A DNA stretch of 61,945 nucleotides, the filler included, from Choristocarpus tenellus KU-1152 (Eukaryota > Protista > Phaeophyceae): assembly GCA_964200185.2 (NCBI GenBank). It is 11 parts of 11 records of this genome, joined end to end, with 100 filler letters (N's around TTAATTAATTAA, not from the genome) between each part and the next. Parts side by side here need not be neighbours in the genome. Positions count along the whole stretch, not along the records: positions 4,126 to 10,651 come from CAXNAD020007937.1; 10 more parts are not named here. One strand, 5' to 3'. The number at the start of each line of letters is the position of its first letter. The first letter of the stretch is position 1. The translations under genes and the position numbers were made by a program. This document shows positions 4,126 to 10,751 of the stretch, piece after piece. The notes beneath the pieces were generated by a model. It made no database searches. It had not been told where the DNA came from and saw nothing but the letters and a program-made list of their open reading frames with translations.

Positions 4126-7100
4126 CTGTCCCCCCCACCATCCCGTTCCACATTTATCGACCTGATACCTACTGGTTGCCCTCCCCCCCCTCCCCCAGTC
4201 CCCTCATCGTCATCTCTACCAACATTAGATTGACTCCTGGTGCTGGATTCTTCTTCAGTAAACTCCTCCTCCTCCCCCCCCTCCCTTGCCAAGTTGTTTG
4301 ACTTAACATCAGTGCTGCCCTTGTCTGTCAATACTGATGGGAACAGTCCTGCTGTGCTGGGGACATAACGATCATCACCCTCTGCTTGAGAGAGAGGGGG
4401 GGGTATAGCTGCTAAGGCCTGTAGCTCCACTGCCGCTGTTCCATCACTTCACATAAACACCAGACATTTTAACACACCAACAGTAAAAGGTAGAGTGTAC
4501 AGTCATTGGTAGGGCCAAGGACGAAGGGGGAGTAGTGGGGGGGGGGGAGAGGAAGGGAGAGGAGAAAGACAAAGAGTCAGTATTGAACACACAGAGTTTC
4601 AAACAAAGGATTAGTACAGTTGAGGTTGGGACGGCAGGGCTGAGTAGGTCATGATTGAATGACATAAGCTAGGGTTGAAGCTACAAATATATAGAGCAAG
4701 TCATCCTAGCATACATGTTGCCCATTACAGAACACACCCTAACCCTAGCCCTTAAGTCCAACAGAAGACACAAGAAACAAACCCATGAGTGGAGAAGAAG
4801 ACAAGAAAAAAACACCACCACAACTGACCAAAGGCCTTTTTCATATTGAAACAAAATACATTTTGACCATTTCTAGGAATCCTATAGTGAAACAATATAC
4901 AACTCTTGGACAGCATGACTCACATATATATGTATGATGTAGATAAATATATACCATATAGCAATACCAGGAAGACTATGGTTTCCTGTCAACTAGTACT
5001 GTCAACTAGTATTGCTACTTCTGCGTTTAATTTGACTTTGGTGTGATGGCAGTAGTGCTTGGAATGCAACCATACAAGGCTCTTTTCTTAGGTTACAATA
5101 CACCAATCTCAAGACCAACAGTAATTGTGCCATCATTTGGTTAGGGTTAGGGTTTTAACCCTAAGTTAATAGTAGACATAACTTGTTTCTCATTACACTA
5201 CCAACATACCTTCTTCAAACACACAAAACATAAAACACTCATACTGATTAGGAGGTAGGCTACCCTAACCCTAACATGGAATAATTGAAAGGGATGTCCT
5301 ACTGGACCACCTTGAAATTCAAAGTGTTCCAATGGGTGTAACTAATGTTATCATGCCTTGTCCCCCTGCCTCAACCTCAAATCTAACCCTTGGCAACACT
5401 TTCTCCAATAAATATATGGGGGTGCAGAGGTTGTGTCTTGTGTTTTGGGCTACTTGGGTGATCCAGATTATCATATAGTTGCAATTCAAGTCCATTCATA
5501 GTACTTTGAGTTACTCGAGCTGAATGGCATTCAAAATCTTCATTTTCTGGAATCAAAGAGAGTGAGCTCATGTCCCCTCCTATGGAGGGGGTGGATGCCA
5601 AAGTAGCCCTAACCTCAACCTTATTAGCATCACCTCAATTCATTCCCAAAAAAACAACGAAACCTAAACTAAACTCAGTGTAAGAATTACTCCATAAACA
5701 TATTGTTATGAGAAATAAATTATGTAAATAAAAGTGAAATAAACTATTTTAGAATCTTGGACTGCTGTTAACCCTAACCCTATCCCCAACTCCAATGCTA
5801 GTCCACAGTACAAACCAACTTTTGAAACATTGAAAGCATACAGTGGTGTTAACCTATGAAAATTTCAAAGGCATTTGAGGCAAGACTTGCATGACCACAG
5901 TATATGACACCTATTCAGTGAATTCCAGGTGGCAGCATACTCATTGCAGTCAAACCACTCCACCACACCAGCATCTCTAAGGTCATTGTTAAGGCCCTCC
6001 TGCTCCATGTCCATCAGTTAGAAGAGTCAGGACCAAACAAGGAGAGGTTGAGATATAGGGGTGGGTTAGGGTTAGGGTCATGGAGCATTTTTCGGACTTC
6101 TTGTGCAATTGAATCGTGGTATGTCCAAAACTATTTTAAAAATTCAGCAAAAAACACTAAATCAACGCCAGCCCTAACCCTTAATACCAGATATATTAAA
6201 AATGAATCAAGTAATGACATCAGAGTTATTATTACGTGTATTTCATAATATTCATATTACTTGCATAATAGTTGTGAAGTCTACTGGGGTCATGAGTGAG
6301 TTATGAGATATTTGGTACTAGGGTTAGGGTCTAACCCTTGCCCAATTTAGAATGCATAATGCTTGCTACAGAGTATCATATCAATAACTGTAAATAAAAA
6401 AATGTTACAAAAGGTGGTGCACGACAAAGGGTTAGGGTTAAGTGTAAATAGAGTTAAGGGTTAAGGTTAAGCGTAAGCACAGGAAGTGCTATAATGTATG
6501 AGTGTGATGCAGTAGTAACACAGATTAGGATTAGAGTTATGGTTAAGTACAATAAAAAAACATACAGGACATGCTAACCAAACAACTGCACCCAACGCCT
6601 TCAACTTGTTGGAAAACCAAGATACAGAACTATATATTTGAAGTACAAGATAAAGATCAAAACCTTGTTGCACTCCACCAGGAACTGAACAGTACATTCT
6701 TGTCAGTGTTGGCACCATAGTCATCATAGTCATCATGGTCATTTAACCAATGCCAGGAGTATCTGGGTTAGGGTTAGGATATCTTGGGTATTTAGGGTAT
6801 CTTGGATAGAAAGGGTTAGGGTTAGTGTTTGAATGACTTCTTTCACGTCTATCAATAGTTCTATCTGAAGGGTTAGGGTTAGGTTTAGGGATAGATTTCT
6901 ATATCTACAAATTCATATGCTGGGTGTAGGTTAAAAATTAAAAAAAAAACTGACTTGGCAGAAAGGCGTTCATTGGTCAGGGTTAGGGTTTGACAAGTTT
7001 GAGAGGGGTGTTTCAGTGTTGAGGATTGGTTAGTAACAAGCACATATGAGAATCACTACAACAATACTACAATACTACAATACTACAATTCTACAATACT

Positions 7101-8117
7101 ACAATACTACAATTCTACAATACTACAATTCTATAATACTACAATTCTACAATTCTACAATTCTATAATACTACAATTCTACAATACTACAATTCTACAA
7201 TACTACAATTCTACAATTCTACAATTCTACAATACTACAATTCTACAATACTACAATTCTACAATTCTATAATACTACAATTCTACAATACTACAATTCT
7301 ACAATACTACAATTCTACAATACTACAATACTACAATACTACAATTCTACAATTCTACAATTCTAGCGTGTGCCTGAACACACCGTCCAAATTGAAGTCA
7401 CCAAAAAACACAAACATGTAGCGCAGGTTGTAAGATGTAATATATGTAAGATGTAATATATTTAAGATGTAATATATGTAATATATTTAAAGTGTAATGT
7501 GTATTGTGTAATATGTATAAATCGTAATGTGTAATGTGGACTGGTCCAGCTGTATGGTGGGGTTATGAATATTTTCTGGGAAACATATCTCACTGTGTTG
7601 TTAACGAATTGAAATGGATTGGAAGCTAGGGTTAGGGAGGATGAAATTGAGGCACAATATGTGCAAAAGAGTAACATGAAAACGTTGTAGGGGAAGGAAA
7701 ACCCTAACCCTAAATGTCAGTCCACAGAACAATGTACAGAAACAAAAGAAATGTGAGGGGAATATGAAGCATGTAGAAAACATAGCTACAAATTTGGTAA
7801 TAAGGTTAGGATTAGGATTAGGGTTAGGGTTAGCAGCACTAATAACTCAGATAATATCACTATTATTATTTCTACCATCATACTTGATTAAAACAAGAAA
7901 CAGAGTAACATGGGCAGGTAGTAATTGGTAGGTGTTTAGGGCTAGGATTAGGGTTAAGGATATTTACCTCTTCAGTGCACTCCGCCAAAGCATCCAGAAC
8001 GCACTCCAGGCCCCCAAAACTCTCCTTACTAGCATCGAAGCAGGCATTGAGAGAGGAACTCTTGTCGTCATACATCCTCAGGACACACTTCAACACAGGA
8101 TGGTGTGGACTAGAATA
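4126..8117 (-). CDS. Fragment of a multi-exon gene, unknown product
   Basis: Candidate AG/GT-bounded exons: 8117-7968 (YSSPHHPVLKCVLRMYDD...LAECTEE, 150 nt), ~6684-6598, ~5999-5911 (EGLNNDLRDAGVVEWFDCNEYAATWNSLN) and 4435 to the contig end (low-complexity). Phases could not be fully reconciled. Confidence 0.4.
7054..7345. repeat. 9-bp tandem repeat AAT(A/T)CTACA, ~30 copies
   Basis: Direct reading: aatactaca and aattctaca units alternate. Confidence 0.95.
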
Positions 8118-8888
8118 CTGACAAGTGTAGGGTTAGGGAAGGGGAAGGGGGGAGGGGACGTTCTTGGTGGGGGCAGTGTTGACTTGCTATCAAGGAACAG
8201 GTGGTTCACATCATATCTTGCCACAGTTACATTGTGTGTTAAGACAAACTGATGATTGTATTCTCTAGTACTGGATTGGAAAAAAAAAAAAATTGTTGAA
8301 AATCATAAAAAATATAAGATGTTCCATCTAGAGCATGTTCAAGATTGTGCAAAGTATCAAACATTTGAAATCATATCAAATTTAAACATGTTTCCACACA
8401 ATGCAAAATATGAATTGCTCCAAATCATACACAATCACAATAAAAACTGCCAAATCATAGAAAACATAACCTGTTCAAATGATGCAAAATACAAGATGTT
8501 CCAAATCAAATTTAAAAAAAAATTCCAGATTATACAAAACAAAAAAATATGTACACAAACCTTTGTAGGAAGAGACTGTATATTCTTTGAACACTCATGA
8601 TAAAATACACACATTGGGTAAACTATTCCAAAAAATATGCAGATAGATTTTTTCTATTTTTAAACAACTCACATACACATACAGACAACACACGTACTCC
8701 AGACTACTTGCTCAAAATTATTCTTTCATTCCTGCAAACAAATGTTTTCTACTTGACATGTTCCTAACCCTAACACTAACCCTAACGCTTTCATAGTGTG
8801 AACAAATCAAAAATATCAACAGGAAGAGTTAATCTAGAAAATCAGAACACACACACACATTACATTATTTTATAGTATGAATTATGGA

Positions 8889-9259
8889 ACACACTATCAA
8901 TAATAACATAGGGCTATCATACAATATCAATACTAACACATAGTTATCATATAACACTATCAATATTAACATGTGGTCATCATACACTCTGATGTAGCTA
9001 TAGTGTAACACTATCAATATAAACATATATATATGGGTAACACTACCATTACTAACATGTAGTGATCATACAACACTATCAATATTAACATGCAGTTATC
9101 ATAAGAGTGTCATCAATACTAACATGTAGTGATCATACAACACTATCAATATGAACATGCAGTTATCATAGAGTGTCATCAATACTAACATGCAGTTATC
9201 ATATAACACTATCAATATGAACATGCAGTTATCATAAGAGTGTCATCAGTACTTACATG
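8889..9259. repeat. ~33-34-bp minisatellite with two alternating unit types
   Basis: Repeated aacatgcagttatcata..., aacactatcaata and gagtgtcatcaata units. Confidence 0.85.
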
Positions 9260-10330
9260 TACTCCCTTTGTTTGGGTTGATTAAACACCTATGAGTTTGG
9301 AAGGGTGGAATGCCACACCCTGGGACAATGAAGATATGGGAAGATAGGATATGTTTGTATACATTGTCATTAAGCTCTGTTTAAAATTTAGTGAAAAAAA
9401 TCAGTACATCCCAAGCTCTATGGTCTTCCCCTCAGCCTGCAGGAAAGCCATTCCCTTGGTCACCAAAGCTGCATCTACATACACTACTATCTGCGTATCC
9501 TCTTGTATATTACACACTCCCTTGGTGTTGTTAACCCTAACCCTAAGTACTTCAACACAGCCTTGTACTGTGCAAAGAGACTCTGCCAGACCTTGTTATG
9601 GGTCTCAGTGTCATACTCTTCACATTGTGTACCAGTTCCTCAATGTTGTCCAAGCAAAGGCACCCAGAACTGGTCTGCAGAGAGTGGAAGAATCTGAGGT
9701 CCAGAGTGTTCAAACCCGGGGACTGGGCAACTTGTTTGAGCACACATATTGAGAATCCTCTAGCAGTGGTCCAATCATCCACTGCTTTCTCGGCAGATGT
9801 TGGATGTGGCCTTGCATTGTCGTCCTGAAGGAAAACAAAGTCTGCTTTAGGGTTAGGCTAACCCTAACCCTAACCCTAAACCCTAAACCCTGCTTTAACA
9901 GGCATGAGTGAGACACTAAAGCTGGCAAGACCTCTGAGCATGTTCTCATAAAGCTCACCAGTCATGTTGGCAGTCTTTGTCTCAATGATACCTTACTTAG
10001 GGTTAGGGTTAGGGTTAGGCGTGATTACAGGATGATCGTCTTGCTTCAACTCACTCTGTCAGTGGTCAAATGTCGATCTTACTGTCCCACCAAGTTCCAT
10101 CCTCCAAAATGCGGGAGGGTGTATTGACAGTCAGAAACATCACTTTTGGAATGGGTGACTTGCTCGTGATCCGAGGACACTTAGGTGGTGCCTCCACAGG
10201 CTTGATGTAAACCCTTTGCCGTTCGGAAACCAGGTCAAACCCTAACCCTAACCCTAACCCTAACCATCTTTGACCGAGGTGGACACGGTCAAACATGAGC
10301 TCAAACACGTGCCCCGTACCCTTTTTCAGG
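9260..10330 (-). mobile_element. Dead Tc1/mariner transposon (DD39D/plant-mariner-like) with transposase pseudogene
   Basis: Minus-strand motifs in order: MFDRVHLGQRW|FDL (cf. VHxDEKWFYL), SKSPIPKVMFL, WDSKIDI*PL, ARRSSCN, GIIETK, EVLPA, QDDNARPH, KQVAQSPGLNTLDLRFFHSLQ, NIEELV, KVWQSLFAQYKAVL. Stop at 9403-9401. A TA+CTCCCT terminus at 9260-9267 resembles Stowaway/DD39D TIRs. Multiple stops and frameshifts. Confidence 0.9.
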
Positions 10331-10751
10331 ACGATAAACATGATGATAAACATGATGATAAACATGTTAAGCTGTCCTTGACGATCTGTTGTCCCACACA
10401 ACTAGTTATATTATTGTTTATTGACTTGTACCACAGTTGAGAAGAGAGTGAGATACCTGTACTAGGTGGGGCTCACCAGTCCTTACACTTAATGACTCAG
10501 AATATCAAATGACTCAATGTTTCTCTAGTACACGTCAGAAACACTCCGACTCTAATAGTCCGCCGATTACTTCTGGTCAAATACCCTAACCCTAAATATC
10601 CCAAATGTCCCGCATTATCTTCTGTGCGTACATAAAATAATACTTCAAATCNNNNNNNNNNNNNNNNNNNNNNNNNNNNNNNNNNNNNNNNNNNNTTAAT
10701 TAATTAANNNNNNNNNNNNNNNNNNNNNNNNNNNNNNNNNNNNNNNNNNNN

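Follow-up and report, generated by a model that had tools for sequence, protein, structure and literature searches.

The genome of the brown alga Choristocarpus tenellus carries thousands of short internal tracts of the telomeric hexamer TTAGGG, and telomerase probably synthesised these de novo where the DNA was broken or nicked internally. The tracts belong to a known kind, the short interstitial telomeric sequences; the process behind them is concentrated in certain regions and comprises two-ended patches and seeded rewrites as well. The window, meaning the whole stretch of DNA that was analysed (61,945 nucleotides, filler included), contains the part of interest at positions 4126-10651, which is contig C7937 of an assembly of 164 Mb in 27,310 contigs.

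Within the window, (TTAGGG)2 at no more than one mismatch has 32 matches, compared with 0.03 expected from shuffles, and tract orientation is mixed (14 plus versus 12 minus). Tandem Repeats Finder (TRF) detects four hexamer arrays, all perfect or nearly so, at 9532-9546, 9858-9891, 9997-10019 and 10238-10265. The first-pass annotation had described four TTAGGG tracts, in both orientations, within a dead mariner transposase. These tracts are real and absent from all 12 other copies of the element, and both orientations do occur. They are, however, not a special feature of the transposon, as that description had it, for 19 perfect tracts of at least 12 nt are spread over the whole 6.5-kb contig, at about 3 per kb. 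The features referred to below are these:

4736-8786, both orientations: further tracts, at least 14 of them perfect and at least 12 nt long, plus degenerate ones.
9257-10331, minus strand: decayed copy of a Tc1/mariner element of plant type (apparently DD39D), the full element being about 1.8 kb.
9532-9546, minus strand: short rewrite, in which TTAGG+CGA+TAAC on the G-strand has become TTAGG+GTTAGGGT+TAAC, net +5 bp.
9842-9888, no single strand: head-to-head patch, a 47-bp insertion recognised from alignment and sequence.
9994-10019, G-strand on plus: replacement event, TAC plus about 3.8 repeats (26 nt) standing for ancestral CGGG, net +22 bp.
10241-10264, G-strand on minus: 24-bp insertion of exactly four repeats, with 12 empty copies and 100% matches in TRF.
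10367-10651, plus strand: high-copy MITE (about 330 bp) that sits within the mariner copy and is cut off by the end of the contig.
10583-10595, minus strand: seeded rewrite in the MITE, in which TTTAGG+CG+GGG on the G-strand has become TTTAGG+GTTA+GGG.

The host of the four tracts is a mariner-like element whose minus strand, over 9401-10330, reads as a broken transposase with a DEKWF-like motif, then FLQDDNARPH, then SPGLNTLDL; the stretch 9257-10331 encodes the C-terminal two thirds of the protein. The left family boundary lies at 9257, the left inverted repeat begins at 9259 directly after TA, and inverted matches of 34-44 bp are found about 1.76 kb apart in two copies (L004 and L009), where the far match would mark the other end of the element. 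Searched against the genome it comes from, the stretch returns 57 matches. Copies are readable for DEKWF, QDDNARPH and LNTLD, the second and third acidic residues are spaced by 39 residues in the reading frame of copy L006, and most copies start with TA+CTCCCTCTG. Both this spacing and this start are typical of plant-type mariner-like elements, and the starts resemble Stowaway/Osmar ends. The classification rests on motifs and relatives, because Pfam gave no significant family on the catalytic part in four reading frames of the element and a profile built from 11 fragments found nothing among solved structures. In a single-sequence search the only solved relative was the catalytic domain of Sleeping Beauty (SB100X), a weak match at E 0.18. 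Database searching returned a 100% identical protein from Choristocarpus tenellus and relatives at 30-38% identity in Laminaria, Pylaiella, Sphacelaria and Aphanomyces, and some stramenopile relatives carry the Tc3-type DNA-binding domain PF01498. The window copy is about 85% identical to the other copies, which are 86-88% identical among themselves.

A 5' truncation of this mariner copy at 10331 was considered and rejected, as the nested MITE follows there and the rest of the copy continues on contig C1557 (117-528 and 737-1080). The last 99 bases of C7937 (10553-10651) are identical to positions 1-99 of C1557; the two contigs are therefore neighbours, and the break between them falls in the high-copy MITE. 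The mariner copy is bordered on either side by a 33/67-bp satellite (8891-9261 and C1557 1086-1860), so the element was inserted into a satellite array, and no copies of this satellite were found other than these two flanks. Two additional repeats are specific to this mariner copy, namely a tandem array at 10333-10366 (12-bp unit, 2.8 copies) that adjoins the MITE, and a 208-bp minisatellite with a unit of about 16-23 bp at C1557 529-736. Elsewhere in the contig, the 8-bp unit ACAATTCT forms a 38-copy array with 89% matches at 7061-7365.

In a MAFFT alignment, the four tract sites are empty and intact in 12 of 12 other genomic mariner copies, and the tracts are thus copy-specific. Deleting the 24 bp at 10241-10264 gives back the exact family sequence, so that the pre-insertion state is recoverable just as the first-pass annotation had proposed from the removal of four hexamers. 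Because the perfect run at 10238-10265 measures 28 nt and the insert 24 bp, 4 nt, reading GGTT on the G-strand, pre-existed, as had also been claimed. In the 9994 event, the cytosine of an ancestral CpG is the precise point at which new sequence sets in, and the first unit reads TTAC. The patch at 9842-9888 is framed by a duplication of the 8-bp target CTGCTTTA (9842-9849, and again 9890-9897), and its interior consists of 8 nt of G-strand (9850-9857), a single C and 30 nt of C-strand (9859-9888), the latter including two 7-nt TTTAGGG-type units. Its left 3' end, ...TTTA, and its right 3' end on the other strand, ...CAGG, both run in register into G-strand repeats that meet head to head. The tract at 9532-9546, previously regarded as a further insertion, does represent an event at a TTAGG seed but turns out to be a short rewrite rather than a clean insertion.

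Events with a known empty site number only five, four in the mariner copy and one in the MITE, and the placement of their junctions is partly ambiguous. Telomere-register microhomology of 2-5 nt had been anticipated at such sites; in this small sample, read post hoc, 3-6 nt of in-register microhomology is present at the point where G-strand synthesis starts in 5 of 5 events, against a chance expectation of about 0.3 nt per junction. The seeds are GGTT at 10265, TTA and AGG at the two ends of 9842-9888, TTAGG at 9546, and TTTAGG in the MITE; at the empty sites, the pre-existing seed is no longer than 5 nt in the mariner copies and 6 nt in the MITE.

The MITE extends the evidence from single copies to a site that has been hit repeatedly. 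Its family comprises 426 first-look candidates, its copies are 92-96% identical, and reads cover it about 2000 times as deeply as unique sequence; two subfamilies can be distinguished, and several copies adjoin one and the same unrelated repeat. Outcomes at the site were determined by a flank-anchored pattern count in 89 copies with exact flanks, which was preferred to the aligned sample, biased as that is towards the window's variant. The CG-type site is kept in 57 of the 89 copies, six of them decayed to TG or CA, while the one-repeat rewrite TTTAGG+GTTA+GGG occurs in 29, with one locus counted twice through the overlap of C7937 and C1557. The other outcomes (3/89) are two added repeats, GTTA with the CpG kept (C4022), where GTTA sits precisely between TTAGG and the CpG, and one extra C. 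The rewritten form is found on both sides of the sole well-supported tree split (96/96). The tree is too star-like for independent rewrites to be counted on it: in its best version it requires 9 changes, but supported branches force no more than 2 of them, and hence no more than 2 origins of the main rewritten form. Altogether, the single MITE site records at least about five independent events, and much or most of the 33% of copies that are rewritten could derive from amplification of rewritten masters.

The direction in which tracts meet provides the strongest evidence on the template. Head-to-head junctions, in which G-strand is followed by C-strand, were searched for with 12 nt on each side and a gap of 0-8; genome-wide, this yielded 22 matches at 21 sites, compared with 0 for the tail-to-tail order, which appears at 2 sites only under a laxer 9+9 nt. 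The sequence examined locally gives 3 to 0; the tracts at 4736-8786 include the head-to-head patches 5139-5164 and 6319-6338. G-strand followed by C-strand is the order expected if 3' ends are extended with G-strand and then joined, and the reverse order cannot arise in this way. The asymmetry of 21 to 0 argues against the capture of duplex telomeric fragments and against the copying of G-overhangs, and it points to a C-rich template, presumably telomerase RNA. The commonest head-to-head junction, GGGTTAACCC, would be the expected product of two G-tails ending in TTA and annealed at the self-complementary TA.

It is on the same count that DNA-templated patching becomes rather unlikely. On this account, broken 3' ends would engage telomeric DNA or extrachromosomal telomeric circles by invasion or annealing, copy some repeats with polymerase theta or through break-induced replication, and return afterwards to the original strand, which would suit both the microhomology at the junctions and the short templated inserts that are typical of theta-mediated end joining. 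A variant string, TTAGGA-TTAGGA-TTAGGG-TTAGGG (window 7800-7833), recurs at 97-100% identity at no fewer than seven loci with unrelated flanks, as if drawn from a variant-bearing source, although this recurrence is weak evidence because the loci were chosen by their similarity to the query. Variant units (TTAGGA, TTTAGGG) are common and the 9994 event starts with TTAC, features that could reflect copying from variant-bearing DNA; TTAGGA may itself be a frequent product or a decay form of the repeat. A duplex or G-overhang donor, however, would template the C-strand equally and thus predicts the tail-to-tail junctions that are missing at the stricter setting and limited to two at the laxer one.

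The tracts are concentrated in particular regions, as judged from listed pattern matches together with about 174 kb of other loci found by DNA searches. Those transposon-bearing loci hold five tracts of at least 11 nt outside the MITE site; contig C7937 is about 100 times denser and therefore a regional hot spot within a genome that is tract-rich as a whole, a local excess for which the insertion mechanism does not by itself account. Since C1557 adds five tracts within 1 kb, the hot region extends over at least 9.8 kb, and no terminal array is reached in the sequence examined of either contig. Across contigs C1-C72, 36 of the 65 listed tracts are located on four contigs; similar clusters occur on C30, C37, C67, C73 (11 tracts of at least four repeats in 15 kb) and C15538 (nine tracts in 3 kb). 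Between 7380 and 9256, there are no paralogues usable as empty sites.

The hot region overlaps an expressed gene on the minus strand. In run X3, a 2080-nt contig at a depth of 211 links position 5998 directly with 7967; read on the minus strand, the joint has GT..AG ends and an open frame runs across it, and exons are recognised near 5911-5998 and 7967-8120. About 12 tracts consequently lie inside one intron (5999-7966) of this gene, whose introns hold tracts, satellite and transposon alike. Such strong clustering within the introns of an expressed gene, in a region of no less than 9.8 kb with about 3 tracts in each kilobase, and with comparable clusters on the five contigs just named, might be taken to mean that selection keeps clusters as binding sites for telomere-repeat-binding Myb proteins (telo-box, insulator or heterochromatin seed), in which case density would measure retention and not mutation rate; plant TRB proteins do bind short internal telomere repeats (PMC10167121). 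This is an unlikely explanation, given tracts in dead transposon sequence, many of them decaying, and mixed orientation. It also leaves the origin of each tract unexplained, so that it would complement the synthesis of tracts by telomerase instead of replacing it.

Genome-wide, in-register TTAGGG matches number 6354 for three repeats and 2344 for four, whereas the reversed hexamer of the same composition gives 6 and 2, about 1000 times fewer; the control hexamer is therefore not equally expanded. The difference of the two TTAGGG counts, 4010, corresponds to about 4000 internal tracts of at least three perfect repeats. Perfect tracts of at least four repeats are estimated at about 1360, given that 58% of the first 100 listed matches start a new tract. 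In human, 229 loci with at least four repeats, mismatches allowed, are known in 3.1 Gb (PMC7215372), and about 1360 perfect tracts in 164 Mb thus amount to a density around 100 times the human one. The very high frequency claimed in the first-pass annotation is borne out by these numbers, except that it is not uniform but regionally concentrated.

The length of the seeds and the control hexamer make ordinary microsatellite slippage from chance seeds a very improbable source of the tracts. Some arrays do contain 7-nt or variant units, and the 9532 and MITE events change length by only 2-5 nt, as slippage might. Seeds of 6 nt or fewer at the empty sites are nevertheless too little for it to act on, a same-composition hexamer is about a thousandfold rarer, and slippage cannot yield head-to-head patches or an 8-bp target duplication.

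TTAGGG also fits as the terminal repeat of Choristocarpus tenellus. Five contigs open, at their positions 3-5, with an array of at least 10 repeats that reads CCCTAA in 5 of 5, and arrays of at least 10 repeats occur as TTAGGG near the estimated, hence probable, ends of contigs C4708 and C5896; the telomere of Ectocarpus is TTAGGG as well (10.1101/2024.05.11.593484). Perfect arrays of at least 10 repeats are additionally found deep within contigs, or close to contig ends but oriented wrongly for a telomere (C379, C3068, C5384, C5942, C6618 and C6997), so that the genome has long internal arrays as well as short tracts. As regards gene content, an exon for the TERT RNA-binding domain is present (33.7 bits, cut-off 25), as is a Ku exon.

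Short reads support the assembled sequence. Logan contigs from three public runs, all from a single 2024 study whose strain is possibly the assembled one, match 4700-7090, 7804-9079, 9416-9580 and 9892-10226 with zero differences. The first of these intervals is spanned by one 4174-nt short-read contig, again with zero differences; a 365-nt contig (runs X1 and X3) spans the 9994-10019 tract, and a 165-nt contig over 9416-9580 includes the 9532-9546 rewrite without a difference. The three long tracts are entered from their flanks to a depth of about 30 nt, the 9842-9888 patch from either side. An artefact of sequencing or assembly, with chimeric long reads or faulty polishing as its cause, for instance, might have been suspected in a species assembled from long reads (10.1101/2024.02.19.579948) with short contigs broken at repeats, but it is scarcely credible when unitigs of three runs match the tract-bearing sequence, bridge a 23-nt tract and enter longer ones from both sides, which rules out a long-read artefact.

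Copy-specificity, register and polarity thus support the main thrust of the first-pass annotation, the patching of breaks by telomerase, with polarity and register arguing for telomerase as the probable enzyme. In the mechanism envisaged, a 3' end that finishes in a few repeat-matching nucleotides would pair with the C-rich telomerase template, gain one to several TTAGGG units and finally be sealed to the opposite side of the break, in many cases with 2-4 nt of microhomology at the joint. Extension of one end only would produce a tract of one orientation, and extension and joining of both 3' ends of a staggered break would produce a head-to-head patch with a short target duplication. The process would have to be frequent enough to account for about 4000 tracts, and it would be concentrated in hot regions about 10 kb long. 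The abundance suggests that, for each megabase of genome, telomerase acts at internal breaks with roughly 100 times the frequency seen in mammals. Furthermore, the long tracts are perfect within a host copy that is about 15% diverged, and other tracts of the contig are decayed, which indicates a continuing process.

The origin of the breaks may be partly reflected in the CpG sites at which synthesis begins. In 3 of 5 events (9994, 9532-9546 and the MITE site, a small sample read post hoc), new G-strand sequence sets in precisely at the C of an ancestral CpG, and the 3' end reads TTAGG in two of these three. At 32 ancestral CpG sites of the mariner family, decay to TG or CA affects 41% of copies, whereas the overall difference from the majority in the alignment (9257-10331 against L002-L017) is 8%. 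This excess fits CpG methylation and matches the retention of DNMT1 in the Discosporangiales, the order of Choristocarpus being reported as the only one among brown algae to have kept it (Phaeoexplorer preprint, 10.1101/2024.02.19.579948). As a tentative suggestion that has some chance of being right, telomerase may be primed by base-excision-repair nicks at methylated CpG as well as by double-strand breaks; AP endonuclease, acting after the removal of deaminated 5-methylcytosine, would leave such a 3'-OH. Existing tracts, moreover, might recruit telomerase or be fragile, which would make hot regions self-reinforcing.

Comparable tracts are known from several systems. In primates, rodents and the horse, short interstitial telomeric sequences have been inserted during double-strand-break repair (PMC2246262, PMC7215372, PMC8537989). 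The mammalian tracts resemble those of Choristocarpus in the exact species hexamer, in sudden insertion at an empty site, in the attribution to telomerase from sequence, and in small deletions, target duplications seen occasionally and head-to-head arrangements seen rarely. They differ in number and arrangement: the horse has 142 loci with at least four repeats, human and horse genomes being about 3 Gb each (PMC7215372), whereas in Choristocarpus the estimated 1360 perfect tracts lie in 164 Mb, are clustered at up to 3 per kb and include two-ended head-to-head patches as a recurrent class. The empty sites in Choristocarpus, furthermore, are paralogous transposon copies and not orthologues.

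In human cells with induced breaks, telomeric insertion and neotelomere formation have been documented (PMC5388398; 10.1101/2022.10.31.514589), and there, too, telomerase extends internal 3' ends of little complementarity. Those events are experimental, rare and actively suppressed, whereas the products in Choristocarpus are fixed in the germ line, in thousands. Ectocarpus and Chlamydomonas possess subtelomeric satellites with telomere-like seeds (10.1101/2024.05.11.593484). Ectocarpus shares with Choristocarpus a brown-algal genome, a TTAGGG telomere and short internal motifs thought to seed healing; the motifs of Ectocarpus and Chlamydomonas, however, belong to a 98-bp monomer that is repeated towards the ends of chromosomes, in contrast to the Choristocarpus tracts, which are separate insertions, in both orientations, into unique intron, transposon and MITE sequence. 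Chromosome arms of Caenorhabditis carry interstitial telomere sequences as well (PMC6800518). The likeness lies in many degenerate and perfect internal tracts across a compact genome, while the Caenorhabditis repeat, TTAGGC, is different. To our knowledge, event-by-event insertion with a polarity asymmetry has not been reported in Caenorhabditis. A literature search found no report of internal telomere repeats in Choristocarpus tenellus, and the density, the clustering, the polarity statistics and the recurrent seeded site appear to be unreported in a brown alga.

Cells are thought to bar telomerase from internal breaks because healing by a telomere loses the chromosome arm, and fixed internal insertions in mammals are rare curiosities. 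Thousands of datable single insertions in Choristocarpus tenellus would constitute a natural record of telomerase versus end joining, in which the 3' ends used, the number of repeats added and the mode of rejoining can be read, and for the many insertions that lie in transposon copies, paralogues supply the empty site. The two-ended head-to-head class would be the direct scar of two nascent telomeres fused to each other, and, given the clustering, one may ask whether a tract, once present within a chromosome, gives rise to more of its kind. Should the CpG link hold, it would tie telomerase to DNA methylation and base excision repair. For brown-algal genomics, the tracts may serve as a simple marker of break-prone regions.
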